Shown piece by piece: positions 2,549-37,670 of a stretch of 64,000 bases of DNA. Both the position numbers and the translations under genes were made by a program. The notes beneath the pieces were generated by a model, which worked only from the letters and a program-made list of their open reading frames with translations, did not search any database and had not been told where the DNA came from. The stretch's first letter is position 1, and each line of letters opens with the position of its first letter. Source of the DNA: Eutreptiella sp. 'Long Island Sound 2002' (lineage: Eukaryota; Protista; Euglenida); NCBI GenBank assembly GCA_964036045.1, contig OZ038378.1, positions 91,450,001 to 91,514,000 on the forward strand, given 5' to 3'.

Positions 2549-3593
2549 GCACGCGCGAAATGGCTAAAAATCAGAATTCCGTCGTGGTGCTTCGGATTCG
2601 GGTGAAATTTTGGTGCATGATACCTATGCGTGTGAAGTACAATCACACAAAGTTTGAGCAAGAAACTCAACGGTGGCGGCCGGGAACAGGATTCGCAAGT
2701 GGCGGACCTCGGTTTCAAAAACTGCAGTTTAGGGCCAAAAATAGCCATTTTTGGGCCAAAAAAGCCCTGGAACCCATTCAAAACGGCCAAATGAAGGGGA
2801 ACGGTGGGTACACTCCACGCGCGGCTTGACTTCCCCGTGTCAACGAGCCCTTTGCGGCGCTCTCGCTCCATGATATGTCCCGAGAACGGCCCAAAAAGCC
2901 CGCAGAAGCTCCAAATTTTGTGTAGATTGGCTGTCGACAGCCACAAACCAAGAATAGGCCATATCTTTGGCTACATGGCTCAAAATGCGATTCCGAGGGC
3001 ACCTACTCCACCCGCAACCCCCCACTTTTGTGGTTTCCAGCCCTCAGAATTGCCCAAACGGACGCCTAGACCCCAATACCTAGCCCCACTAGGCCGCGGC
3101 AAGCTACAAGCTCAAGCCCAAACAGGTGGGTGCCCAAATGGGTCAACAGGGTCCAGTAGGGGCAAAATGATGACTTTTCTCAAAAATGATCCCAGACCAT
3201 GTGCGACGCTAAAACAAGTGTTTTTGGACCGTTTTGAGCTTGTGGTGGCCCATTTTGGTCCTCCGAAAATCCCAAAATGCCTTGAAAAAAGGCTGTTTTG
3301 GGACCAAAAATGGGTCAAAAATGGGTCAAAAACACATTTTTCCAAAACTCATCCTAGACCATTTGGGGTGCACAAACAGGTAAAATGAGCCCATTTTGAG
3401 CCCATTTTGGGGCATTTTGGCCCCTCAGAAGTCCAAAAAGCCTTGAAAGTGGGCCTTGTGGTGATGGGGTTCACTTGCAAGCTGATTTCACTTTGTCAAG
3501 AGCCATCAATGTGTGAATCATTCTTGATGTCCCTCACCAGTCATAGCTGATGTTCCCTCCCCCACCAGCTTGGTCCCAATATTCAGTCTTGAT
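2439..3593 (+). mobile_element. Helentron/DINE-1-like non-autonomous element inserted in a TTAGGG tract
   Basis: It has a 13-bp subterminal IR, accgagctggtgg (2440-2452) and ccaccagcttggt (3562-3574), 12/13 matching. An (AAGC/AGC)n microsatellite lies at ~2505-2550. The 3' end is ...cagtcttgat, there is no TSD, and the flanks are agggt | tagggtt. Confidence 0.65.
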
Positions 3594-3722
3594 TAGGGTT
3601 AGGGTTAGGGTTAGGGCTAGGGTTAGGGTCAAGGGTAAGGTTTGTGGGTAGGGTTAGGAGTAGGCTGAGGATTGGGGTGGGCGTTAGAGTCAAGGTTGGG
3701 TTCAAGGATAGTGTTGGGGTGC
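3594..3722 (+). repeat. Interstitial telomere-like (TTAGGG)n tract, degenerating rightwards; its left part is at ~2400-2438
   Basis: The sequence reads tagggttagggttagggttagggctagggttagggtc, followed by degenerate hexamers. Confidence 0.9.
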
Positions 3723-4059
3723 AAAGTGGACAAAATGGGCAAGGGGAATGAAAAAAAAAATTCGGGCGCCTTCGGCGCCACCATATGTATGGCCAGTAGC
3801 TGTTGACCCTTGGCAACTAAGTGGGCCCGGAGGGCAGGGAGGGGGGGGGGGGAGTCGCGTACCAGAACCGAGCAGACGTCCCCCCCGTGACCACGGGTGT
3901 GTTTTGCATGCCATGGTGTAGTTCAGAGTGCCCAGCTTTAAATTTGCACCAAAGGGTTGCTACATTGAAAGGTGCAATACAGACTTGTTGCGTATCACCC
4001 TCTCCCAATGCCAGTGCTCTCTCTTTGCCCCTAGTAGACGTGCTCAAGGTAGATCATGC

Positions 4060-5549
4060 AACCCGTTTTCCCACAATAATACGAAAGGATTCCCATTCAT
4101 GACCGGACCAAATTGGAACATTTGGCAATTGCATCCTAGCTGGGCCACGGACTGGCTTCGGACCACACCCACTTACCGAGATCCACTTTGTTGGCACCAG
4201 GCTTATCTTTTGGCAAACGCTTTACCTTTTCCAACTCCTCATGACTACCTAAAGCATTACACTGTTGCAAGAGGAACCAGTAAATCAGCACACGACTGCA
4301 CGTCGACAGCGGCTACTATAGTAACATATGCCTAGATTCATTCAGCATGGGGTTCTCCGTATGCAAAAACACCATGTCCCATGTGCAATACCTTTTGATA
4401 CTGCCAAGTAGGGCACATAGCCCACCAGATGTGCACCCCGCAAAAGTCATGTGTGTCAAAATCTCTCCAAGGGTATCACGACCAAGACCCACGATACCCC
4501 TCATTGAAAAAGGGGGCAAGATGTGTCATGTGGAAAGTAAAAATCCGTTCACAATCGAGAAAATGCGCTACAACGAGTAAAATTTGGCAGGCGGGCAAAA
4601 ATCATCACAATTTCACCACTTTTAGTCTCAATGGCATCCACACTTGGGCCGGCACGCTTAGCAGCCCATTACACAAAAGATACAATTGGTTTCCAAGTTT
4701 CGTAGAGGTTATCTTGTGTTAGTGCGCGCATAAACAACGAACTAAGAACAGTGACGGTAAATCAGGGTAACCATTAACCAACACACAATGCAACGGTTGA
4801 AAATCCCGGCTTGCCACACTCACATAGAGCAGTACCAAGAGCTGACTTGGGGCCATCACAAATGTGCATTTCAGTGTCTAGGCAACGGCAGACGTGTCCG
4901 ATAGTTAGACTAGTAGTAGCATGCTGTATTGAATTCTGATCGTCAAAAATCATTGGCCGTGATTCCAGGGGACATTCACCACTTCCACCATCACATTGCT
5001 CAGCCAGTTAGGCGCCCCTTTGCCACACTTCACAGCATCCTTGCACATATCAACCAGAGCAGATGACACATGCTAGCCCCGAAATACCCAGTAATTCCCA
5101 GCTACAAAAAACGGTGCATGTGGTGGCAATAGAACAACAAAAGCGCGATGCAACACACGAACGAGACGCACGAGATTCGCTAGATGAGTTCAACAGCACA
5201 AACAAAATTAGCACACCCCAGCATCCAACCAGCACATCACAAAGATAGGTCGAGTTCGGGGGTTGGCCTACGGGTTCTCCCGTAGTAGCACCACCACTTT
5301 TGGGTCTCGGGTCCTGGCCTGCCCATGGTGTACGCTGCCATCAAACCTCACTTTGCATACTGGTACTTTTCGTAGGTCCTTGTGTACCCATTTCACAGGT
5401 CGGTCTTCTTTTAGTAAACCATGATACTTTCTTTTGGTACTGGCCTTTGTGGCCCCTAGGGACTTGGGCGCGACTTGGCTCAAGGAGAGATCCTCGTCGA
5501 TTGTACCCTCCAATAGGTGAGCTAAATGGGTAGGTTGTCCACTCAACAT
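4060..5549 (-). pseudogene. Element A accessory ORF-B (unknown function)
   Basis: WVHKDLRKVPVCKVRFDGSVHHGQARTRD aligns to B WIKKELVKIQLTKIKFDTDLTRGQTRERD. PFSMRGIVGLGRDTLGEILTHM...IKRYCTWDMVFL aligns to B PYTLRPLTGLHSDQMDEILLYM...LKRDRLWEMLYL. HEELEKV...DLGKWVWS aligns to B HEMQRVL...SLGKWT*S. Multiple stops and frameshifts. Confidence 0.8.
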
Positions 5550-8489: not shown

Positions 8490-10315
8490 CTTTTTTTGAC
8501 CCCATATCTGCCATTTGCCCCCCACCGACTCGGTCCCAATGATCAGTCTTGATGAGGGCTACAAATTCAGGAGAGAAACTATTGTGCCAAGATGAGGGTA
8601 CCAAATGCCGGTGTTTTCCCATCATGAATGGAACATCCAAACAATGCAAAAGAGCCATTGAGGCGCCATATTTCAAAGAGAGAAGGGGGGGACGCTATGA
8701 GGACTTCCATGGCGTCCATGTCTAGTTAAAGACCACCTAATGGCTTAACAATTCAATTTAGCTGGCAACAAGCAAGCAGGCCACAAGCAAGCAAGCAAGC
8801 AACAACAAGCAAAAATTATTACTTTCATACTGTTGCAAAATTGAACCATTTCTTTTAACATTGATGTGCATGTCAAATGGCAACTTGTCTGAACTTGGTT
8901 CCCAAAACAAAGTCAGTGGTGGCTCTCATTGGCCAAAAAAGTGGTAAAAAGTAGCTATTCCCTGTAAGCTTTTGATCATTTCATCTTGAAAGTTCAAGAC
9001 GAAGCGTGCTATGCCAAGCTAGTGTTTGCAAACGGAACTAATGTTTTTTTTTTTATCAATAGGACATCAATGCGATGCAAATGTGCGATGTTGAAGATTG
9101 TAGCATTGTGCCATGGGCATTTTGGTGCCAAGAAATAGCTCCTTTCCGTCTAACTTTGGGCACCGATGGCCGGAAACCAAGGATAGACCCCGTACTAGTG
9201 CTAATTATGTGGCAACAAGCTGCAAGCTCGAGCCCAATCACATGGGCACCCAAAGAGGTCAACATGGTCCACCGGGGGGAAAAAAACACGTTTTTCGAAA
9301 AATGATCATAGATCATGTCGGATGCCAAGAAAATTGGTTTTAGATCATTTACAGCTTGGATGGCCCGTTTTCAACCCCCTGAAAGTTCCAAACTGCCTTG
9401 AAAATGGGCCAATGTGGGACCAACATTCGGCAAAAGATGGGTCAAAAAATATCTTTCCAAAATTGATCATACACAATTTGGGATGCAAGGGAGATAAGCC
9501 CACTGTGAGCCCGCTTTGAGCCCTTTGGGCTCATGGAAAATGCAAAACGGCCTTCATTCAAAGGTGAGGAGGAGGAGCACGGAGGACATGAGGACTTTAC
9601 CTGGCATCCATGTGTAGTTACGTCCCCTCAACGTAATAATAAATCAGCTCCAAGCAAGCAACAAAGCAAGCAAGCAACAAGCCCCCAACAATACTTATTT
9701 CTCCGACATACCGTTGCAAAATGGAATCATTGCTTTTGCATATTGATAGGCATATCAAGAGGCAACCTTTCCCCAACTGGCCTCCCAAACCAAGGCATTG
9801 GCCAAAGAAGTGGTACAAATGGCCAGTTTCTGCCAATTTCGGACATTTCCTTCTCAAAAACCAGGATGGAAGGTGTTGTGCCAAGATGGTGTTACCGAAT
9901 CGCGCCATTGGTTTCTTGCAATGAATGGGACATAAACGGGATGCACATGAGCCATTGAGGAGCCATATTGCAAGCTGGCATTCTATCAAAGCAGCATTTT
10001 GGTGGTGCAAAACAGCTATTCTAGGGTTAGGGTGACCGAGCTGGTGGAACAAGTCTTGGTTTTATAACCGGTTTTAGTGTCCCGGGTGGACCTACCAGGT
10101 TTAGCAAGCCAGCAAGCAGCAAGCATCAGCAAGCAAGCACACGCGAAATGGGCAAAAATCACAACTCCGTCGTGGTGCTGCGGATTGGGCCAAATTGATG
10201 AATGATATGTATGGATGTGAGGGACAGTCACACAAAGTATGAGCCGGGAACTCAACTGTGGCGGCCGGGGAACAGGTGACGCAAGTGGGGAACATGGGTT
10301 TCAAAGTCTGTTTGA
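8490..10315 (+). repeat. Mosaic of fragments of the Helentron-like family and a related AAGC-microsatellite repeat
   Basis: 8522-8553 resembles the 3' end of 2439-3593. 9280-9530 resembles 3170-3450. 8765-9030 resembles 9640-9880, and 8590-8680 resembles 9880-9975. 10034-10315 is a 5' head copy preceded by ctagggttagggt. Confidence 0.75.
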
Positions 10316-10722
10316 TAGGTTTGAGTTCACCTGTAAGCACGTGCTACCGGGGCTATGCTTTACCGCAAACTGTGTCTGGAGACCAAAACTGGGGGGTTTC
10401 CGAGAAGACAGTCAGGTATACATCGTCACGGCGCCATGATGAGAGCGCGCTAGCCATGCGACATAAAATACCACAAACAAGGAAAGAGAAACCAGCATAG
10501 TCTGTGAATAGTTCAGGGTGACCCAGAACCCCCCAGTTTCTGGCCAAGCGTTTTTGGATGCACAAAAATCGCCGCAGCACCTGCAGCCTGGTTAGGCTTG
10601 TTGCCGTATCAATGCTAAACCATTTGCCAAACAGTGTTTGCCACCGTTGCACATGCAAAGGAAAGGCAGGTAGAGGGAGGGAGGAGAGAGGGAAGGGAGG
10701 GAGGGAAGAAGAAGCTTCAGAC

Positions 10723-10874
10723 CTTTCTCGAGTGTCCCTCATCTGCTGCTTGAGCTCATCAATCTTCTGTTCGTAATGCTGCCGCACGTCCTTCTCAATC
10801 TCCTTTTTGGTGAGATCCAGAGCCTGGCTGTGCTTCTTCGTCAGGTCATCAATTGTTGCCTCCAATTCTGCCAC
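10723..10874 (-). other. Isolated candidate exon encoding a coiled coil (VAELEATIDDLTKKHSQ...RDTRER)
   Basis: A 152-bp open frame lies between the acceptor ttcttcag and the donor GTCTGA. It has heptad-like composition. No partner exon was identified. Confidence 0.45.
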
Positions 10875-12281
10875 CTGAAGAAATACAACTTACTGCTTTG
10901 TAACATGTAGTGCAGCAAAGACATTGCCTCCAAAGCAGGACCAATTTCGCGGTGACTGGGGCACTTTCAGAGCAACAAACCTGTGGACCTTGGAGCCTTG
11001 TTCCAGAGCTCCAGCGTCCCATTTCCGAACGGCTCAAAGCTCCATCTCCCTCCCACAATTGAAGGTGTTTGATAATCAAGGGACGGCTCTACCTGCCGTT
11101 GTCAAGCCAGGCTGCGCTTCAGGAACCACAGTTTTTGGCAAAAAAAAAAACAAACAACTAAGGGCCACCCTCTGGGACATGCTCCGCTGGCGCACGTGGC
11201 GCCCATCATGCGCAATGAAACGAAAACAGGAAAGATGACAGGATTTCAGTTGAATGGCCCTGGCCATGACCACACCCATGTGCATGAATGTCTGCAAAGT
11301 CCTTCCTGCGTACAGTGGCAGTGACACTCCAATACGCAATTGTGTGTGATTGGGAGGTGGCGTAAGAAAACACCAGCTTTGAGTTTCAGCAGAGGATCAA
11401 CAGGCATCAATATGATTAGATGGCCAAACTCCTAATTGGGGGACCCAGTTTTGCAGAGTTTTGACCCATGGTATTTGCCACAACCCTTGAAAATGTGGCT
11501 GAACCTCAACAACGGTGGCAAGTTACCGGCCAAACGCCATGAGAAAGGGCATGTGAACTCACAAGTAGCACAGCCCTGGGGTTCACCGTGTTTCCGGGGA
11601 TCAGATGGGGCTGCCAGGGCCGCTCAGCGATCTCTCAGCACGGCGGCCAACCTCAACACTGAAGGTTGTCTCGTCTGAGGGGGATGGTGATTAGTTGTGA
11701 TACATTTGGCCACCCTGACGCGGGTGCCCAGGATGCATTGCAAGGGGAGGGGGCCGGAGGTTAAGAGATGTCTGGAGTGGTTTGGAAGGTGGTTGGATGC
11801 CAAAGAGAGACAAGCAGGGGGGAGGGGGGGTTGAAAACGTACGGCTACAAACCCCAAGAGCACCGCAGTCATATCACAAGCTGTCATGAAAGACACCTCA
11901 CACATTCACACTGCACTTGCTTGTGTGACAGCGGGGCATGTATCATAGTGCATACGCAACACCACACTGAGCCATGTGCGAGGGAGCATGGCACCCCTCG
12001 AGGGACCCCATGGAACCAAGCAATGGGAGTATGACTTCTAACCTGATAGTAGGAAACTTCAAATTGCTGTTGTCAATATTCCTGCAAAGGAAACAATTTA
12101 TCAACAGCAAACAAAGCACCAAATACTTCATAGAGAGAAAGCTGCGTACAATGGTGCGAATTTAGCGCAAAGGGCACGAGCTCAAACAGTGATGGACCCA
12201 CGCTGACGTGTAGCTAGACACATTCTGCAGCAGGGTAATGCAAATGTGGAAGGGGGTGCAGCACGCTTCTCACCCTGTTGT

Positions 12282-13826
12282 TCACCCTGCTGTTCTTTGC
12301 GGGGTGCAAGGTTTGGCTGTCCTCTGTCGCTCGCGGGGGGGGGCTGAGGACCTTCGTCCTCCACCAGGGTTACCTTTACCAGGAGATCTCCCCGGGTTAC
12401 GGCCTCCCCCATTAGGGTTACCCTTACCACCCTGATTCCTCCTTTCTTCTTCCACTTTCTTATGTTTTTTGGATTCGCGCCGTTTTATATGGCATTCAGC
12501 CTCGTAATGCCGCCGCTTGCCGCAATACTCACATGTTATAGTGCAGTGGAAGTGACCATCTTTGGTTTCTAGCTTACGTTGCAACTGGAGGAGGCAGTAG
12601 GATCGCCCATCATAGTCATGGGCGTGGCATGGTACTTCTTTGTTGTCCGTAGGACGGCGGTAGAGAAGAGCAGGGACCCCTTTTCATTTGAGGTGGGGGT
12701 CTCCTGCATATGCTTCAATTGCCCTCCTGCTTACCCTCGTTGGGGTTAGGTTGAGAAGAACTCCCTCGAGGACTCCTCTCGGTTGAGGTTTCCTTCTGCA
12801 GGTGCTTGTGCAGGTACTTTTCCATGTGGGAGTCCTTCTCCCTCTCCATGGCCAGCTCGATCAAAAGATCGACCAACTCATCATTGGAGTGCGTCGGAGA
12901 TTTCCTCTCAGGCTCCCTGCAGTTCTCCCAGGTTTTGGGATGTATTTTACCCACCAGCCACAAGTGGGGCTCACGGGGACCGTAGGAGGTGGGGTTCATC
13001 CGCCCCATAAGCTCCTCCAGCTGGGGCACAAATTCCGATATCCTGGCAGCCGTAGGGAATTCGGGCAGCGTGGGCAGCTCCTCCATTTCTGTACGGACAT
13101 TCAAGTCCGTTTCGTACACTAAGTACATTTGCTCCAGCCTTCTCATAAATTCCCCCCAGCTACTGCTTTTCCTTATGGCAGTCTTCACCTGCCGTTGGAG
13201 GAATTTCTTTTTGCACGACTTCTTGATAAGTGTGCATTTGGTTTTTGCGTCATCGTCGTTCTAACCCGTGAGAAAAGGAATTCAAGGAATTCCTCGGACC
13301 ATTCAGACAAGTTTTTCGGATCGAACCTTGGGAGTTCAATTTGAAGTTTCACCGTAGCGATAGCCTTCGTACCCCTGCCGCATCCACCTGCAGCACCTGT
13401 AGCATTTGAAGGGGGTGCGGGGTTTGTGATGGCCAGTGGCGCCAATGCAGCCACACCATAACTCTTCATCTCAGCCTCAGGTGTGTCACCCACATTGCAA
13501 AGAGGCACAGTCCTCACAAAAGGATGAAAGGGGCTAGGACAGGTATCCTTGGGAGAGGTGCGGATACCACGACAGCTCTTCACGTCGCTGGTTAAAAGTT
13601 CCACACCCCGTGACATAGTTGGGTGTGGTTTCTTCAGATCAGCCAACCCCAGTTTAGCTTTGACCGCCGCCAGTAGCGCACTCAGGTCTAGGGCCTCTTC
13701 ACTGGCTCCCAATACCCGAGTGAGGAGGACCACGGTCTCATCAAGACCGGGTGTGGAAGTTTCCGCGTGTGGGGGAAGGGCACCCTCTACCTTGACGGGT
13801 GGGGTTACCTCGGGCTCCTTCCTCAA
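12282..13826 (-). pseudogene. gag: Retrotransposon gag remnant (capsid-like region plus CCHC zinc knuckle); no pol found
   Basis: It shows a LPRFDPKNLSEWSEEF capsid-start-like motif, a helical WGEFMRRLEQMY segment and a CEYCGKRRHYEAEC knuckle (C-x2-C-x4-H-x4-C). The sequence is split over three frames. Confidence 0.8.
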
Positions 13827-29667: not shown

Positions 29668-30054
29668 GCATGGGGCCTTGGCTCTCCTCCTGAGCGACAT
29701 TGGGGTCCCGGAGGAGCTAATAAAGCCCTTTCATATCCTTAGCTGCGGCTCCACGGTGCGCATTGTTACAGCGCACGGTCCCGACCCAAACATCCGCCTC
29801 CATCGGGGCCTACGGCAGGGCAACGCGTAAAAAGCCGTGCTCTACCTGTTCCTCCTAGAGCCCCTCATGCGGAGCTTTGCCCGACGAACCCAAGGGGATG
29901 CCCGCCACGTGGGGCCGCCCCTGGTACAAGCGTATTGTGACGACCTCTTGCTAATAGCGCACTCCTTGTCGCGGTTCGTGGAGTACGGAGGGGCAGTACT
30001 TGCCATACATTGGCATGTCCCTCAATGTTGGGAAATGTGCGTACGCCACTACAA
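29668..30054 (+). pseudogene. Non-LTR retrotransposon 2, RT domains 3-6 (5'-truncated)
   Basis: It reads HGALALLLSDIGVP, RLHRGLRQGNA*, LYLFLLEPL, VQAYCDDLLLIA and GMSLNVGKC, with one stop and one frameshift. Confidence 0.9.
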
Positions 30055-30381
30055 CCCTTGGTACACGCTAGAAGACCCAGTCTCGATTTAGCCTAGAACA
30101 CTCTAGCCTATATGTTCTAGCCTAGATTAGATCAATACTAGAACAATATAATGTCTACCCAGATGTGCAAATTTCTTCATTGTTCCCCCGTGCATGCTTG
30201 CTATTGTCCGCAGTTCATTGTTCCATGTTTCCTTCTCTCGCGCTTAGATATTACACATTTCTTTGCAACGAAACGCCCCGCCACGTCCCCCCGTGCTCCA
30301 TCCTCAACCGGGAAGGATACTTCCCTCTTGTCTAAGGCACTATGGGACTCTAGTGGGGCTTAAAACCTCAAGGATGAGCGG

Positions 30382-31700
30382 GTGGGCCATTACTTGGCCA
30401 CGTGGGCGCTATCATGCCCCCTAGCACGGCGGCAATTCAACAACGCCGTCCAATATGTGAACTCCGCCAATTCTACTCACATCACGGGTAAGGCATGCAA
30501 GGTCGCCATTGAGGCATACACCGGCTCCCTTCTCCCCCCCACCGCCATGTGTGAACTAGTGCTCAACATGAGGGCCCCCAGGTCCTCGTGGAGGACCCTC
30601 TCGGAGCTCTACACGCTCTGTAAGTTGGAGTACCAACGCACCGTCCCCGGTGGCCCCTACTCCCGCCCAATTTGTACCGAGCGGGGTTTGCAAGCCCGTT
30701 GGAAAGAGTTGGTCGCCCTCGTGCAATTGGATGAGCCCGTTGCCACGGTGTTGCCCAAGGCCACCAGGAGCTCATGGCCCTTCGCCTCATGGGTCACATA
30801 CATCCTCTCGCGGCCGGGCTTGGTGCGGTCAATCAACCGCAACTTCCCGTTGACGTTCATCATCTGGGGAGATGCCTACCCCGTGGCCGGGGGCAATTGT
30901 ACCCAACTCACTATCTCCTTGGCCAACTTCGACCACTTGGCCCGCTCCCCCGCGGGCCTTTGGGTGTTGAGCATGACCAATTGCGATGACAAGGCCATGG
31001 ACACCCTTGGGACGTTGTGGAAGAGCAATTGGGAGGTAGGCCTCTCAACTAGTGCCTTTCGCTCGTTCTAGCTTTGATCTAGTTAGCCTCGAACACCGCT
31101 CGCTAGAAGCCAGATTACACTAGACTAGAACGAAATTAACCACCCCCCATGTCTCGTGTTTAGGTGATTCAAGACATCATCGACACATGGCTCGTCCAAT
31201 GGGGGGCCTTCAAGGAGGAGGCAAAGGTGATCCTCGGGGGGGATCAACCGTGGACACGAAGGGTGATCGGGGTGTCCACCTGCCCCCAAGTGGGCTCTAT
31301 GTTCAATGGGGGGATATGGAATGCCCAAAAGAAGATTAATTAAGGGTAGTGCTATCCGGCGGACCATGGAGGGTGATGAGGCCAACTACACGGCCTTCCT
31401 CCTTGGGACGCCTTCCTTGCAAGCCGCTGGCTGCTGTACGCAGCGGATTTTGAAAATGCCACGTGCATGGGTCGTCTTGTGCATTTTGCACTTGACAATG
31501 GCCATGGGCCGCGTTTTGGGGAAGTTTGTCGACCGGAAGGCTAGGTCGGTCACCCCTGCTCTCCGTCAAGGCCAATGTGCAATCGCAGTGCATGAAATGG
31601 CTGTTTGCATACTTTGACGTGTCGTGGGTTGTGCACGGCGGGCCGCGGTCGCAAGTGCCATGCTCGGGCAGGGATGCCATGGAGGTAAGGAGGGGCTTCC
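30382..31700 (+). pseudogene. Element D transposase, RAG1/Transib/Chapaev-like, two exons (intron 31036-31163); C-terminus missing or decayed
   Basis: D1 is FIIWGDAY. The in-frame splice WKSNWE|VIQDII leads to D2 KVILGGDQPWTRRVIG. After one frameshift comes the C-x2-H motif LCILHLTMAMG. Confidence 0.75.
31036..31163 (+). other. GT-AG intron 1 of element D
   Basis: gag|GTAGGC...gtgtttAG|gtg is phase 0 and joins the reading frames. It contains gttctag and ctagaacg motifs. Confidence 0.8.
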
Positions 31701-31779
31701 CTCAACCAGAATATTGACCAACAACATGGCATCGAAGGAGTTGATCGACGAGCTGATCCGCCAAATATCTGGCCTTGTT

Positions 31780-31913
31780 GTGCGCTCTGGCGCTGATCTA
31801 GGGAGGCGTTCTAGCGTTGATCTAGGCAGCATAGTTGGTCGCTAGAACGTCGCTAGAACACCGCTAGAACGGCTGCGTAGAGCGCCACTAGAACGCTCCT
31901 GTGTTTTCTATAG
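31780..31913 (+). other. GT-AG intron 2 of element D (alternative donor GTAAGG at 31685)
   Basis: The acceptor is gtgttttctatAG at 31913. The interior has gttctag/gatctag copies followed by ctagaac copies. The donor is uncertain. Confidence 0.6.
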
Positions 31914-34170
31914 AATCAGGCGACCCAAGCGTTGATTGCGCAGATGAGGCGGAACAGGCGCAGGAGCAGGAGGAGCAGGCCCCGCCGAAGGCCTAGCAGG
32001 TCGAGGCCAAGCCCAAGGCCGCGGCCAAGCCACCCCCCCTCGCCAAGCCCAAGGCCAAGCCCCAGCCCCAACCCCAAGCCCCAGATCCACCATCGCCACC
32101 CCCTCACCTGTTGGGGGCCAGGAAGTCGGCGGCGGCGGCCCCGGAGGACACGGAGGACACAGAGGTGAAGGAAATGCGGGGGGAGCTCCGAGGGCTCTCG
32201 GCTTCCCTCGCAGCTCAGAAGGCGGGAAAAGGCTAGGGTGGAGAGCAAGGTCTCCCTATGGGAGACCAAGCTGGCGGAGGTACGGAGGATTGGGGATGAG
32301 GAGGGGATCCGCATGGCGGAGGACACTGTCCGCAAGCCGAGGGCCAAGGTGGTGTGCAAGGAGAAGGGGATCCAGGCGCTGGATCGCAGCGTGCGGAGGA
32401 TGGAGGTGGTGTTGGCGGCGGCGGTGGATAATGTGAAGGAGGAGGTGGAGGAGGTGGTGGAGGTGGACGTGGAGCCGTAGGAGATGGAGGGGGAGGCGGT
32501 GAAGAACGAGGTGGAGGCAAAGGTGGTGGTGGAGACGCCGGCGGCGGGGGGGGTGAGCAAGTGGCTCGGGGCGATGATGGGGCTGAGAAATGCGGGGGCC
32601 ATGTAGGACTTGCCATGGGACCCGGCTAGCCTGGCTGGCCCCCACCCCCCAAAACTGGACACCCCCCCCCTCGCCGCCCCGGAGAGGCCGATTTGGACTC
32701 TCCGGCTTTTGTTGCAGCAGGTGCACCACCAGCTGTTGGGGAGGGGCGGTGGGTATGGGTGGATGAGGGGGGGGTGGTCCAGCTGGACAAGCCCGTGCGG
32801 CTACGGGTGGTCAAAGGGTGGTGGGGGTGGCAATAGGAGTTGCCGGGGGCGGGGAAGAAATGGGGGGAGACGCCCCGCCCCCCCCGGAAATGGGGGTGAA
32901 GATGTTTGAGTTGGCGCAAACCAACCGCTTCACCCCCGAGAGGAAAAGGGGGGGGGGGCCACCCAGTGGCGGTTCGTCGCCAATTGGGCGGGATGGAGTA
33001 TAGGGTGATGGCTTGGACTTGCACACAGACCTGGTCGGCGCGGATGCACATGGGGGGTTTCAACCCGGAGGCGGCGAACCGGGGGGCGTATGCCGGGTTG
33101 GTGGACGGCATCGCCTCCCGGCCCAATTCCAAGCCCAAGCCCGGCGCGACCCCCGTTGGGGGCCCCCTGCAGCCGCACCCCCCCAAGCCCCGGGACGCCT
33201 TCGGCAAGGCCCTGGGGGCCATCTTTCCCGCACTGGACCGCCAAGGCACGGTATGTTGATTGCGGTCGAGCGTTGATCTAGCGAACCGTTCTAGCGTTGA
33301 TCTAGCAACCACCGTTCCGCCGCCGCTAGAACGCCGCTAGAACAGTTGCCTAGAACGCCACTAGAACACACCTGCACTATGTTTCTGTTCTCAGGTTGCC
33401 AGCGTGCGGAGGTGTGGAGCCGACCACCGCGGGGTGCGCGTGAAGTAGCGTGATGGCGCAGGCCGGACGCGGCTCGTGGGGGTCACCGAGTTGGGCCGGT
33501 TGATGGGGACGGACCCCAGTTTGGCACTCTCGGTGCCGGACGGTTTGGTCAGGTGGGAAGCGTCAGCAGCAGCAGCAGCAGCAGTAGCACCACCAACGGG
33601 GGGAGGTCCCGCCCCCCCCCCCAAGGCCCCCAAACCCCCCCCAAGGCCCCAATGAAAAAAACCCGCTTCGAGATTAGCGACGAAGACGCCCCCCCCCCCC
33701 CCCAGCCCAGCACAACAAGCCCAAGGCCAAGGCCAAGCCCAAGGGCAAGGGCAAGGGCAAGGCCAACCCGCCCCCAAATCCCAAGCCCCCCCCTTGCAAG
33801 ATAGGGGCCGGGACCACTATGGGAATGTGCCGGGTGTGGGGGACACCCGGTATGTCCCTTGGGAGGAGGGGGGCAGTGGGGGGACCGTTAGCCAAATAAT
33901 GGTGTTGGGGGATTGGGATGAGGAGTTGGACCCGGAGGAGTGGTGGGTGGTGTCGCAGGGGTCCAATGGGGAGGGGGGGAAGAAGGGGAAGAAGGGGAAG
34001 AAGAGGAAGCGGGAGCAAGAGGGGGGCACCTTCCAGGTGGCGGGGGAGCTCCTCTTCCGCACCAAGGAGGAGGCAGAGGCCCGCCTCCGAGAGGCCATGG
34101 GGGGGGGACGACGGGGACGACAGGGATGACGGGGATGCTGAGGGGGACGAAGGTAACAAGGGTGACAAGG
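31914..34170 (+). pseudogene. Element D second, low-complexity/coiled-coil accessory coding region (intron 33251-33394)
   Basis: GC-rich frames include ESKVSLWETKLAEVRRIG...EVDVEP and RDAFGKALGAIFPALDRQGT|VASVRR, with several stops and frameshifts. Confidence 0.5.
33251..33394 (+). other. GT-AG intron 3 of element D
   Basis: acg|GTATGT...gtttctgttctcAG|gtt is phase 0. The interior has gatctag/gttctag copies followed by four ctagaac copies. Confidence 0.8.
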
Positions 34171-34864
34171 GGGTGGGGGTGTGGCAAGGTGGGTGAGGTG
34201 GGGGGTGACACGTGGGGTGAGAAGGAAGGGGACACGGGGGACGAAAAGGGGGGTGCCGGGAGCAAGGATGAGCCCCGGCAACACCCCACCACGCAGCAGG
34301 GGTGGCTTGCGTGTCGCGACTCGCGAATGGCGGCCTTGGTGGGCAGGCAGCTAACCATGCTAATCGGGCTAACCCACCACCAAGTGACCAGGCGCCGGCC
34401 CGCCAAGTGACCTTCCAAGTGACCTATGGGGTGCGGTGGGGGCTAACCGGGCTAACCGGGGGGGGGGAGGCGGCGCTCCGTGAGTCGGGTCCGGCATCGG
34501 GACCCTGTGACTGGCCACGGCTAGCCATGGTAGCCGGGTCAGCTTCTCTTTGAGGAGTGGCGGAGCATTCATATATATTGTTCTAGCGGCGCTCTAGCGA
34601 ACCGTTTTGGCGGCGTTCTAGGTGCACTCGCTAGAACGTCGCTAGAACGCCGCGAGAACGAAAATTTTCTGGACTCCAAAATCAGCTGAAAACAATGAAA
34701 TTGTGAGAAAAAAGAAAGTATGGGCCCCCGAGAACGGATAGGGGGGTCCAGGTTAGACACCTCAAATCCCCCCCCACGCGGGGGGGGGCGTCTTTTTTTC
34801 GTTCTAGCCGCTCTAGCGGGTCCTACGCTAGAACGAGATTGGGTCTTCTAGCGTGTACCAAGGA

Positions 34865-37670
34865 AACACGCATCCCCTCGATCATGGTGCACTTGGACCC
34901 TAACAACGCGTCAACCCCGTGGGTCGGTCTGGGGCCCAAGAGTACAGTGCCGCCCCTGGACCTCGGGCTGGATCCGAAAGGAGTGGCATCCATGAAGGAG
35001 AAGCATGTACTCCGTTGCGAAGCTCTTCTAGGCTGCTGCAAGAACACCCTCGGACCGGCGTCAGTACCCCATGAGGTGATGGTAGCGGTGGTCGGTGGCA
35101 TCGTGTGGTACACGGTGCCGTTCTTATCGGACACTGCGAAGGAAGTGATGAGGTTCAATGCTGCCATCAAGACTGTAGCCCTGCATTTTGAAAACGTGCC
35201 CAAAGACCTGTCCAATGCGGTTGCCCGGTCTGGTAAAAGGGCTTAAGTTGGCGGATGTTCGGATCCTTTGCCGTGACTCCGTGGTAGTAACTTCGGCTCA
35301 GCTCACGCATCGTCGCTCGGCTGTGATCAAAGGTGAATTGAGAACCCTGCTTGACGACTTGCACACACGGTTTGGGGTGTGCCGTCAGTTCATGGTTCCA
35401 TCCCCGGCGTTCGCATTGCATGCAGGAGACACGTGGGTGGACCGAGTGTTCAGAGCGATGGGGACACTGGGCGTCCGACTCCTCATGCCCTCGTCGGTGT
35501 ACTCATGGGTGCACGCCCATCTGCCGCAGCTTCAATGGGCCGGACGGCGCCGAGCGACCCTGTCGTACACCTTCCAGGGTAGAGCCGTTTGTGTGTTGCT
35601 TGGACCCCGCACGGACGCGCAGTGAGGTCCCCGACGAATCCGGCGAATGACCTCCTGCACGCGCGGCTTCCATGTCATGAGCCTGAAGACTGGGCCGTAC
35701 AGCTTCAGGGATGTCATTAAGACCATCTGCACCTTCCTAATGCGGAAGTTGGACCCACTAAGCGGGACCATGTGTGGCTAACGGGTCTCCAAGCGGTGTT
35801 CAAGTCCCGGATGCCCGGTCCCCCAACCCATCGTCTACTTCATCCGGTGCGGCACAAAAAGGCCAGCAAGAGCACAAGACGGTCCGCTACAGGCGATGCG
35901 TATGTGGTGGGCGGGTACAGGGACAACGACTGGAATCCAGACTGTCCACGGCTTTCCATGCCCCTCGGCGCCCTGGCCGCCTTGATGTTCTTGTTGGGGG
36001 TGTCCTCGACGGTCATCGGCAACAGGATGAACCGGCGTCAGTCCCCCTTCTTACACCACATGCCGGAGGTGGTCTTGCACCTCCACCTCTGTGGGTTGTA
36101 CACGGGAAGTCAACGTTCGATAGGGCATGCAAGGCGGTGTGCAGACGAGCTGAGTGGGCCATAGCATTACTACTGTCAACGGGCCCTGCCCCTGATGCTG
36201 ATGCGAGCCTGGTCCTGGAGGAGGTCACGTTGGACAAAGTGCCACATGATCTGCACACCCTGTCACCTCGCTTCGCGAAGATGGGGCAGTGGAGCACGGA
36301 ACGGTGGTGGTTTACCTGCCGCACAGGTCCACAACCGTGTCGGGGACCGAGTATACCACCGTGCTGGACGCCATCAAGTCAATATGCGGATGCGAGGTAC
36401 ACTGGCAGTTACATTGAGTACATCGGCCAGAAGCTGTCCTCTCTTCCGAGTTGACGGCTTCCACTGAAGCGTTGCTAGGAAGAGTCGTGGTGAGCCCACA
36501 TTCGGACGTGGCATGGCTGGAGCCCCACAGAAACTGCTAGGTGCCAGTGGCGGCGAAGGTCACGTCGTTTCATGCCTCTCCCCAAGAAGACGGGGTCACC
36601 AACGCGGTCGTGGCGAGCCACGTAAGCCCAACGTGGGCAGGTGCCATCCGCGGCACGGTCCCCGAGAAGGAGATCATCGGGACAGCCGCTTACCTGCTCC
36701 ACACACCTCCTTCAAGCCTCATGGTACATGTGGTGGATGCCTCCATCATAGGGGCGCAACTGCGTAGGGCTCAAGAGGCCCTTTACCGCGGCATCAAAGC
36801 ACCAACCTCCCATATCATTAACCAACACGCATTGAATTGGGTGGTGGAGGGGCTGCGTCGATTGCCTCGCAGAGTTGGAGGACCCCTCACTGGGTGGCAG
36901 GGCAGAGCTCGCACTTGGCGGTGGCCCCGGTGGAGGAACCAGACTTCGCTGTGGCCCAAGCAAAGGCCCCGCCGGTACACCTCATGTTACCCAAGGAACA
37001 CGCAACCCTCTTGGTGCCTAGTGAAGGTCGGGTGCTAGAACCTCATGGGCCCTCCATGCAGGCCCTCCAAGAAGTCAAAGAGGTGGTGTGGGACTCGTTG
37101 CCAGCGCACACCAGGTACCACACGCCGTTGGCTAGTGCTTGTGAAATTGTGCCTTTGCGAACGGTGCATCATGGCCCCACGTACCAAGATCTGCTGCAGG
37201 CACACGACGGCCGCCTCCCCACCATGCAAGTCATGCGACGGTGGTGGCAAAAAATCACCCGCATGGTGATTCTTGCGCTTCCCTGCATCTTCTCTGATGG
37301 ACCCGAGGCAGATATGGGCCACTTGCAGACACTGTGCGAAAGGACTATGGATGGAGGCTCCTGGCGGGGGGCAAACCGAGTGTACGGGCAGTACGGTGGC
37401 CCCGGCTGCTCGAACACCTCTCGGGAGGATTGGACGGACAGCCAGTTCTGACCTTGGCGTCGACTTGGGACCAGGCGAAACAGGGCTTACTCAGTAGTGC
37501 TATCGCTTCTGCACTGGCGGGTGTGCTTCTGTGCTACCATGAGGACTGCAATGATGTATGGCAGGACCTGTGGTCTCAACGCTGCGAAGGCGGATATGTC
37601 CCATCACGGTCGATAATTCCGCTAATGTGCAGCGGGTGCGGCGAAACGGCGCCGCTATGGGTGCACTAGT
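34865..37670 (+). pseudogene. Non-LTR retrotransposon 2: RT thumb, RNase H-like domain and C-terminal Cys motif
   Basis: The thumb reads VMVAVVGGIVWY...NAAIKTV...GLKLADV. RNase H-like motifs are TVPEKEIIG, VHVVDAS, NQHALNWV and HWVAGQSSH. The C-terminus reads MCSGCGETAPLWVH. Many frameshifts; the RNase H call is less certain than the thumb. Confidence 0.7.

Follow-up and report, generated by a model that had tools for sequence, protein, structure and literature searches.

Near the middle of the window, the 64-kb stretch of Eutreptiella DNA analysed here, lies one copy of an element, D, that by its sequence and family alignment is a cut-and-paste DNA transposon family of about 5.4 kb with inverted ends and a 2-bp target-site duplication. 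The left terminal inverted repeat (30055-30083, plus strand) starts CCCTTGGTAC, and its minus-strand counterpart occupies 34836-34864, where the last base has changed from G to A in this copy. The ends belong to a 51-nt inverted repeat, 86% complementary, whose left side pairs with 34813-34863. Similarity in the family alignment is lost outside CCC, and matching dinucleotides, mostly TA, CA or TG, flank CCC...GGG in 14 of the 16 other full-length copies; the AA pair flanking the window copy (30053-30054 and 34865-34866) is compatible with a 2-bp duplication. An alternative in which the element ends at CACGC and duplicates TA was dropped: conservation reaches CCC, and it is the dinucleotides outside CCC that match in 14/16 copies. 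The family numbers on the order of 900 copies, as estimated from counts of its ends, and BLAST finds no similarity between D and elements A, B and E of the window. The window copy is dead, with a stop codon at 31341 in exon 2 of the transposase, a mutated splice donor, and a deletion of about 480 bp at 31570/31571, measured against full-length D copies. The deletion is absent from the first-pass annotation.

The genes of D run along the plus strand. Transposase exon 1, defined by the ORF list, codon periodicity and homology to the sister lineages D2-D5, carries the first acidic motif (RGDxxP); its bounds, 30382-31035, are those of the open part of the frame. Exon 2 (31164-31764), recognised from the ORF list, alignment and codon periodicity, holds the GGDxPW, CxxH and ESxNxxLK motifs and is damaged in the window. 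Divergence by codon position is 0.047/0.044/0.069 in exon 1 and 0.063/0.057/0.091 in exon 2. The exon 3 region (31914-33250) is low-complexity and G+C-rich, with many open frames and a coding frame not set by conservation; it shows no codon periodicity, probably because of low-complexity tracts and frameshifts. In-frame homology to D2 covers its last ~15 codons. The exon 4 region (33395-34400) encodes a downstream protein with a small N-terminal domain, a P/K-rich linker, a second small domain and an acidic tail, an organisation shared by D2, in which the same N-terminal peptide directly follows the 3' splice site.

The segments between these exons, which are predicted to be spliced out, behave as introns of D's genes. 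Their borders are of the canonical GT-AG type, and they contain a pyrimidine tract. As the first-pass annotation had claimed, 31036-31163 (intron 1, 128 nt) and 33251-33394 (intron 3, 144 nt) are bounded by GT and AG, in the family as well as in the window copy: GT and AG are each present in 17/17 copies at intron 1, and in 15/17 and 14/17, respectively, at intron 3. In a wider set of 45 loci, representing about 30 distinct copies, GT is kept at intron 1 in 44 and AG in 44, and the intron is 128 nt long in all 45. The phase 0 assignments of that annotation also stand. At intron 1, where the frames were said to be joined by splicing, the frame stays open for only the first 10 codons of the segment and is open again from the AG onward, and four intronless relatives (P0096, P0115, P0163 and P0180) are colinear across the junction; at intron 3, D and D2 have homologous peptides on either side, in the same phase, the intron of D2 lying at L047:9459-9672. 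Two short contigs, L053 and L054, were considered as transcripts and rejected, both being genomic and both containing intron 1.

For the middle segment, the 3' end proposed at 31913 is right (3' site CTATAG), but the GT at 31780 is not the ancestral donor: the family 5' site, CAG/GTATA, aligns to 31765 and is mutated to CAA/AT in the window copy. Intron 2 is placed accordingly at 31765-31913, with GT in 15/17 copies and AG in 17/17. A GAG/GTAAGG site conserved in the family (GTAAGG at 31685-31690), in phase 0 with the transposase frame, may be an alternative donor for intron 2, judging from the alignment. The sole protein-level support for intron 2 as an intron is a conserved ATG mini-exon, the last 39 nt of exon 2 (31726-31764), which is read in a different frame and is possibly the start of a second gene. 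Because decay affects most copies, the lengths of their indels, whether or not a multiple of three, carried no information. The idea that the arrays might be MITE insertions missing from other D copies does not fit what we found: the three segments, and a further module in the 3' region, are present in all 16 other full-length or near-full-length copies. By this distribution, the intron segments are ancestral to the D family and not private insertions.

These segments share a short motif with the ends of the element. On both strands of the 64-kb window CTAGAAC has 23 matches, against 3.64 expected and a shuffle maximum of 10, and 21 of the 23 fall inside D (30093-34834). They form six clusters (30093-30144, 31065-31131, 31808-31894, 33288-33367, 34580-34648 and 34801-34834), which correspond to the two subterminal regions, the three introns and the 3' module. 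The clustering at both ends and in three internal segments described earlier is thereby confirmed, as is the order within every internal segment, GTTCTAG-type units first and CTAGAAC-type units second (minus strand, then plus). The subterminal clusters, delimited by motif scan, span 30067-30145 on the 5' side, where GTTCTAG/CTAGAAC units are kept in the relative L054, and 34801-34835 on the 3' side, where the family alignment agrees. The 3' module (34578-34660), a fourth palindromic module present in all copies, is additional to the three segments of the first-pass annotation. In all, D carries about 30 copies of its private motif per element, with core GTTCTAG, often GTTCTAGCG, and copies phased 11-13 bp apart. 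The arrays are inverted arrays of a 7-9-bp unit, not one long palindrome, and the internal ones, in the three introns and the 3' module, stand roughly 1-1.5 kb apart. The general idea of transposon subterminal repeats is present in the literature (PMC1636448, PMC3260210), and our data support the claim that D's introns are built from the same motif as its subterminal regions.

The sister lineages extend this pattern. Each of the four has a different private motif, clustered in gaps between open frames (GTTCCGGCG in D2, GTTCAACCG in D3), with motif cores across the lineages of CTAG, CCGG, CAAC and CATA. A lineage's own 7-mer occurs 30, 15, 35, 18 and 27 times in the five lineages, and other lineages' motifs are almost absent. 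Ends begin CCCTTGG in D, D2 and D4 and CCCTAGTG in D3, and motif clusters occur at both ends in D, D2 and D3, the lineages with mapped inverted ends. Same-strand neighbours are 10-11 bp apart in 45 of 88 cases, and this spacing, a helical phasing, holds in all five lineages. The transposase coding sequence contains zero copies of the lineage's own motif in any of the five, although the binomial test of this exclusion from codons treats clustered motifs as independent. Among lineages whose transposases are only 30-50% identical, the clusters recur in similar kinds of location. The position of D intron 1 is also occupied by an intron in D2 and D4, where it contains the motifs of the respective lineage; outside this D/D2/D4 clade, D3, D5 and other relatives lack the intron, so it has been gained or lost. 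Several D3 clusters are unidirectional and unable to pair locally, so the shared feature is the array, not the hairpin.

An introner-like origin, in which short non-autonomous relatives of D brought or created the splice sites of the three introns and the arrays are leftovers, could explain the gain or loss of intron 1. It could also draw on the homology of introns 2 and 3, which extends over nearly their whole length, spacers and splice-site-adjacent stretches included, and on the transposon source proposed for euglenid nonconventional introns (PMC11282704, PMC11170887). Nonetheless, we consider this origin unlikely, and the mini-element route offered as an option by the first-pass annotation is not borne out. 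No CCCTTGGTAC-type inverted ends or 2-bp duplications are found at the borders 31036/31163, 31765/31913 or 33251/33394, and the segments occur in every copy examined. Genome counts at up to two mismatches give 742 for the module arm, 453 for the D-specific start of exon 2 and 1829 for the D ends, which fits about two modules per D copy and no solo surplus, in a search by exact-word patterns that a diverged family would escape. Repeatedly, two module matches lie about 1.48 kb from each other, which is the distance between introns 2 and 3. Finally, introns at the same position in D, D2 and D4 have different motifs, and an old insertion would need later co-evolution with the ends.

The likeness of introns 2 and 3 points to duplication or gene conversion, either of which could keep the arrays end-like without any function. 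One might propose that the intronic arrays are neutral and held similar to the ends by gene conversion or repair template switching. Consistent with this, the similarity of introns 2 and 3 covers spacers too, and 11-bp units are gained and lost among copies, as in slippage or unequal exchange, their number in intron 3 differing from copy to copy. Against it, motif letters in the introns are conserved like codon positions 1-2 while the spacers drift. With motif columns defined on the window copy alone and identity measured in the other copies, mean pairwise identity is 0.957 in motif columns and 0.892 in other intron columns (Mann-Whitney p = 2e-5), compared with 0.94-0.96 at codon positions 1-2 and 0.91-0.93 at position 3. 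Most copies decay neutrally, and the contrast therefore rests on differences inherited from active lineages. In L054, which is 78% identical, the CTAG units of intron 1 and of the end are retained between diverged spacers, and at its 5' end the motifs are kept and the sequence after the motif cluster has diverged. The persistence of clusters at the same kinds of places across 30-50%-identical transposases, and of 10-11 bp phasing despite different motifs, likewise makes a wholly neutral account very improbable.

The arrays might also be kept for the intron RNA hairpin, which would draw the splice sites close to each other or yield small RNAs tuning the element. Part of the folding evidence agrees: relative to shuffles, fold z is -3.2 for intron 2, -2.5 for intron 3 and -5.2 for the 3' module, and -9.1 for one D2 intron, and Euglena nonconventional introns use RNA structure (PMC11170887, PMC11282704). 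The first-pass proposal that each intron can fold back on itself accordingly holds for introns 2 and 3, but not for intron 1, for which neither the D sequence (z -0.9) nor the D2 sequence (z -1.5) is more stably folded than its shuffles. The motif also fills both subterminal regions, outside the introns, and the unidirectional D3 clusters make local pairing impossible. Subfamily changes in intron 2, read from the alignment, lose pairs rather than compensate, and the canonical borders and pyrimidine tract are not of the nonconventional type. A function of the RNA is, on this evidence, a doubtful explanation, and the hairpin potential of the intron RNA would be a side effect of an inverted arrangement of sites.

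For the transposase, a model of the relative P0115, built on a deeper alignment (pLDDT 85.2, pTM 0.87), predicts a catalytic core with a RAG1/Transib-like fold: RAG1, RAGL or Transib fill 44 of the top 50 Foldseek ranks (best E 2.6e-10), with TM 0.54-0.63 over about 480 columns, and the next family, the P element, has E 0.05. This model supersedes that of P0096, which was poor (shallow alignment, pLDDT 49.5; Z 10-11 over its helical half). Pfam scans gave no family for exon 1, exon 2 or four relatives, even at E up to 1-10, nothing usable in the open frames further downstream in D, D2 and D3, no dioxygenase or ParB-like gene in D, and no domain recognisable as DNA-binding in D proteins; a profile search of PDB sequences returned spurious matches only. 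A large HMM search matched 755 proteins, and the best 150 listed are all of at most 434 aa, with no long spliced product and no named relative among them. The earlier assignment to CACTA/CMC is thus not upheld: there is no Pfam match, the ends lack a CAC(TA) start, and the modelled fold is RAG1/Transib-like. The CMC-compatible features of D are the 2-bp duplication and the subterminal repeats only.

Overall, we believe that the arrays are probably docking sites for a protein encoded by the element itself, and this is the best reading of D as a whole. Selection on internal sites is favoured by the conserved motif letters, the switching of motifs between lineages, their absence from transposase codons and the 10-11-bp spacing, in keeping with the earlier suggestion of internal binding arrays. 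In such a scheme, the reader of the sites would be a sequence-specific protein encoded by D, the candidate binders being the transposase, through its N-terminal part, and the product of the downstream gene. The sites would lie in introns because a compact element has no other internal DNA, apart from the gaps between genes, that escapes coding constraint, and splicing would remove the sites from the message. For example, consider a cell in which the bound protein marks the whole element: a transposition complex might then be assembled or stimulated on copies of its own lineage. Alternatively, marking may regulate D's own expression.

If this is true, arrays of one motif in an element's own introns, replaced wholesale when lineages diverge, would indicate recognition of the whole element and not of its tips only. 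This bears on how a transposase distinguishes copies of its own element from relatives and from parasitic deletion derivatives, and on how transposon lineages become mutually independent. A bolder extension, which we regard as speculative and unlikely, is that the private arrays, with their 10-11-bp phasing, serve as a code by which an element recognises itself along its whole length. Mobilisation or regulation would require a D protein to be bound at sites every ~1-1.5 kb and would thereby be restricted to same-lineage, preferentially full-length copies; switching of the core (CTAG, CCGG, CAAC, CATA) would split these RAG1-fold transposons into non-interfering lineages, and their hairpin-bearing GT-AG introns would be a source of structured euglenid introns. 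D offers a concrete, testable case in euglenids, a group for which the connection of structured introns with transposons is under debate.

Introners and MITE-derived introns are described from Micromonas, Aureococcus and dinoflagellates (PMC11282704). D resembles them in the inverted repeats within its introns and in family-wide similarity, two of its introns being paralogous to each other, but differs in lacking inverted ends and target duplications at the intron borders and in having the segments fixed in every copy of a single transposon family; our counts detect no spread into other genes. Euglenid nonconventional introns have non-canonical borders, with positions +4 to +6 pairing with -8 to -6 (PMC11282704), and they and the intermediate introns are structured and able to fold back (PMC11170887, PMC3935182, PMC11282704). 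D shares with the nonconventional introns the organism group and structured, fold-back introns. Unlike them, D introns have canonical GT-AG borders, a pyrimidine tract, and pairing that begins 12-27 nt inside the intron ends.

Cut-and-paste transposons classically have subterminal repeats; those of CACTA (En/Spm) elements are bound by TnpA, and hAT elements such as Hermes have them as well. Like these, D has a private short motif repeated on both strands in the few hundred bp next to each end, with a presumed reader protein. Unlike these, it has arrays deep inside (three introns and the 3' module), its motif is switched across the whole element between sister lineages, and its transposase is not recognisable as a CACTA or hAT enzyme. 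The 2-bp duplication falls within the 2-3 bp of CMC elements, whereas the ends read CCCTTGG and not CAC(TA). The internal activation sequence of phage Mu, a transpositional enhancer, is an internal transposase-bound site that promotes complex assembly and doubles as a regulatory site; it is bacterial, single and not intronic, and the analogy with D is one of mechanism only. Compared with Transib and RAG1, D has no sequence-level match in Pfam or PDB, a 2-bp rather than a 5-bp target duplication, and CCCT ends rather than the CAC heptamer of Transib. At the same time, it shares with them the predicted fold of the catalytic core, from the P0115 model, and the CxxH motif after the second acidic residue. 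Outside animals, the D family would be a further, unclassified branch of the enzymes with a RAG1/Transib fold.

Across the window, the heptamer CTAGAAC and its complement GTTCTAG number 23, where 3.6 would be expected. The transposon D (30055-34864) holds 21 of these, in six clusters: its 5' subterminal region, three internal GT..AG segments, a palindromic 3' module (34578-34660) and its 3' subterminal region. The first-pass annotation had placed the motif at both ends and in the three segments, with GTTCTAG-type units first and CTAGAAC-type units second in each segment, and all of this is borne out; the palindromic module had escaped it. Elements A, B and E, which neighbour D, are not similar to it in sequence.

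We aligned the window copy with 16 other full-length or near-full-length copies, and counted words (at most 2 mismatches) across the 2.28 Gb assembly, whose contigs are chromosome-sized. Copies are numerous in the genome: there are 1,829 matches to the ends and 453 to the start of exon 2. Similarity among copies starts with CCCTTGGTAC and stops at its reverse complement, the inverted ends spanning about 29-50 bp, and the dinucleotides flanking the two ends agree with each other in 14 of 16 copies (TA, CA, TG, TT, TC, GG, AA), a 2-bp target duplication that is chiefly TA, CA or TG. Judged by these matching dinucleotides and inverted ends, D is a cut-and-paste element. Its full length is about 5.4 kb. 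The window copy has lost about 480 bp at 31570/31571, including part of the transposase, carries a premature stop codon at 31341 and lacks the intron 2 donor; it is dead and non-autonomous. It appears to be nested in a retroelement, since it sits inside an open frame (29837-30054 and 34867-35246) with a reverse-transcriptase-like YCDD motif. Elsewhere, D end pairs 1.9-3.1 kb apart point to many internally deleted derivatives; none of those at the listed positions is very short. In loci L031-L046, the transposase codons include a stretch of about 9-18 G (encoding RGGG) that varies in length by copy and shifts the frame in many; it lies in the part of exon 2 absent from the window copy.

The three segments, at 31036-31163, 31765-31913 and 33251-33394, are best read as introns of D, on criteria taken from PMC11170887 and PMC11282704. 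Across 45 loci, representing about 30 distinct copies, the length of intron 1 is always 128 nt; it begins with GT in 44/45 and ends with AG in 44/45. The exon 1 frame runs ten codons into it before a stop, the exon 2 frame starts from its AG, and both exons show codon periodicity. Four relatives lacking intron 1 (P0096, P0115, P0163 and P0180) align colinearly with D over the exact junction, and the conserved protein therefore requires precise removal. At intron 3, D and its sister lineage D2 have homologous flanking peptides in matching phase, whereas the DNA in between is alike only in layout. The proposal that introns 1 and 3 join the frames is supported. Between introns 2 and 3, no codon periodicity was found.

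Intron 2 is more complicated. The family donor, CAG|GTATA, aligns to 31765, is mutated in the window copy and comes after a conserved ATG mini-exon of 13 codons. At 31685 the sequence GAG|GTAAGG, conserved and in phase with the transposase frame, is a possible alternative. Two conserved candidate donors upstream of a single acceptor (31913), one in transposase phase and the other following an ATG, suggest alternative splicing or a second gene start. Donors of the GTATA type are reported to be rare among Euglena cis-introns (39/11,527; PMC11170887). Counted genome-wide over both strands, a 24-nt word that we take to be the Euglena spliced leader has 5,458 matches and its reversed control 0, which identifies the host as a Euglena.

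Independent insertions, absent from other D copies, had been named as grounds against the first-pass annotation, which also offered mini-elements and an introner-like route as an alternative origin of the introns. Every D copy examined carries all three segments plus the 3' module, contrary to the former. An ancient mobile origin is unlikely, with nothing here in its support: the intron borders carry neither D-type ends nor duplications, and the module arm, found 742 times in the genome, does not exceed what the D copies can hold and is often paired about 1.48 kb apart, like introns 2 and 3. These two introns are paralogous even in their spacers, which implies past duplication or gene conversion; for intron 1, a single gain or loss separates the clades. 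Units of 11 bp have been gained and lost among copies of introns 2 and 3, and the length of intron 1 is constant.

The motif letters themselves are conserved. With motif columns defined on the window copy alone and identity scored in the other copies, mean pairwise identity is 0.957, against 0.892 for other intron columns (Mann-Whitney p = 2e-5). This is the level of codon positions 1-2, and the intron spacers diverge faster than third positions. In a 78%-identical relative from a different assembly, the CTAG units of intron 1 and of the end are retained while the spacers have changed.

A word search with exon 2 recovered relatives at 30-43% identity, forming four sister lineages with private cores: GTTCCGG in D2 (L047, L049), GTTCAAC in D3 (L048, L052), GTTCATA in D4 (L050) and TTGCACA in D5 (L051). 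The CCCTTGGTAC terminus is common to D, D2 and D4 (left end only in D4); that of D3 is CCCTAGTGAC. From D to D5, each lineage carries its own motif 30, 15, 35, 18 and 27 times, with the others' almost absent. Clusters occupy the gaps between open frames in all lineages, both mapped ends in D, D2 and D3, and introns at the intron-1 (D2, D4) and intron-3 (D2) positions; transposase coding sequence contains no copy of its own motif in any lineage. Of 88 distances between same-strand neighbours, 45 are 10-11 bp, equal to one helical turn of DNA, and all lineages show this spacing. Two local arrangements were also seen. L050:2300-13100 is a nest of related elements, where D4 (from 5958) comes before a D copy of 92% identity (9162-13088) and after a more distant, D-like one (3317-4908) in which GTTCTAG units are used too. 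At L047:7400-7760, about five tandem repeats of about 75 bp, without counterpart in D, separate the D2 transposase gene from a second palindromic module.

The introns had been described as able to fold back on themselves. Compared with shuffles, the RNAs of introns 2 and 3 fold more stably (z -3.2 and -2.5), as does that of the 3' module (z -5.2); intron 1 shows no such excess (z -0.9). In D3, several clusters have all their units in one direction, so the common feature is the array and not the hairpin; RNA hairpins are plausibly a side effect of the arrays, one that might aid splicing in some introns. We believe the arrays fit best as DNA sites recognised by an element-encoded protein, because the motif occurs at non-intronic ends and in internal non-coding DNA, its letters are conserved, its units are helically phased and all clusters have switched together. 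Binding might help to assemble the transposition complex, favour own-lineage or full-length copies, or allow the element to regulate itself.

Pfam gave no match to the D proteins or their relatives. The intronless P0115, modelled from a 51-sequence alignment (pLDDT 85.2, pTM 0.87), matched RAG1 in Foldseek (E 2.6e-10, TM 0.54-0.63 over about 480 columns), then RAG-like and Transib transposases (E 1e-5 to 1e-2), with the P element as the next family (E 0.05). An earlier, poorer model agreed over the helical half (Z 10-11), and a protein atlas gave a weak hint toward the same fold. On these modelled matches, D is a member of a RAG1/Transib-fold group. Our literature search found neither Transib-like elements in euglenids nor intronic arrays of end motifs. 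With ends that start CCCT and a target duplication of 2 bp, D is not a typical Transib, and the CACTA/CMC background invoked in the first-pass annotation is not demonstrable for it either; the Pfam result and modelled fold do not support that assignment.
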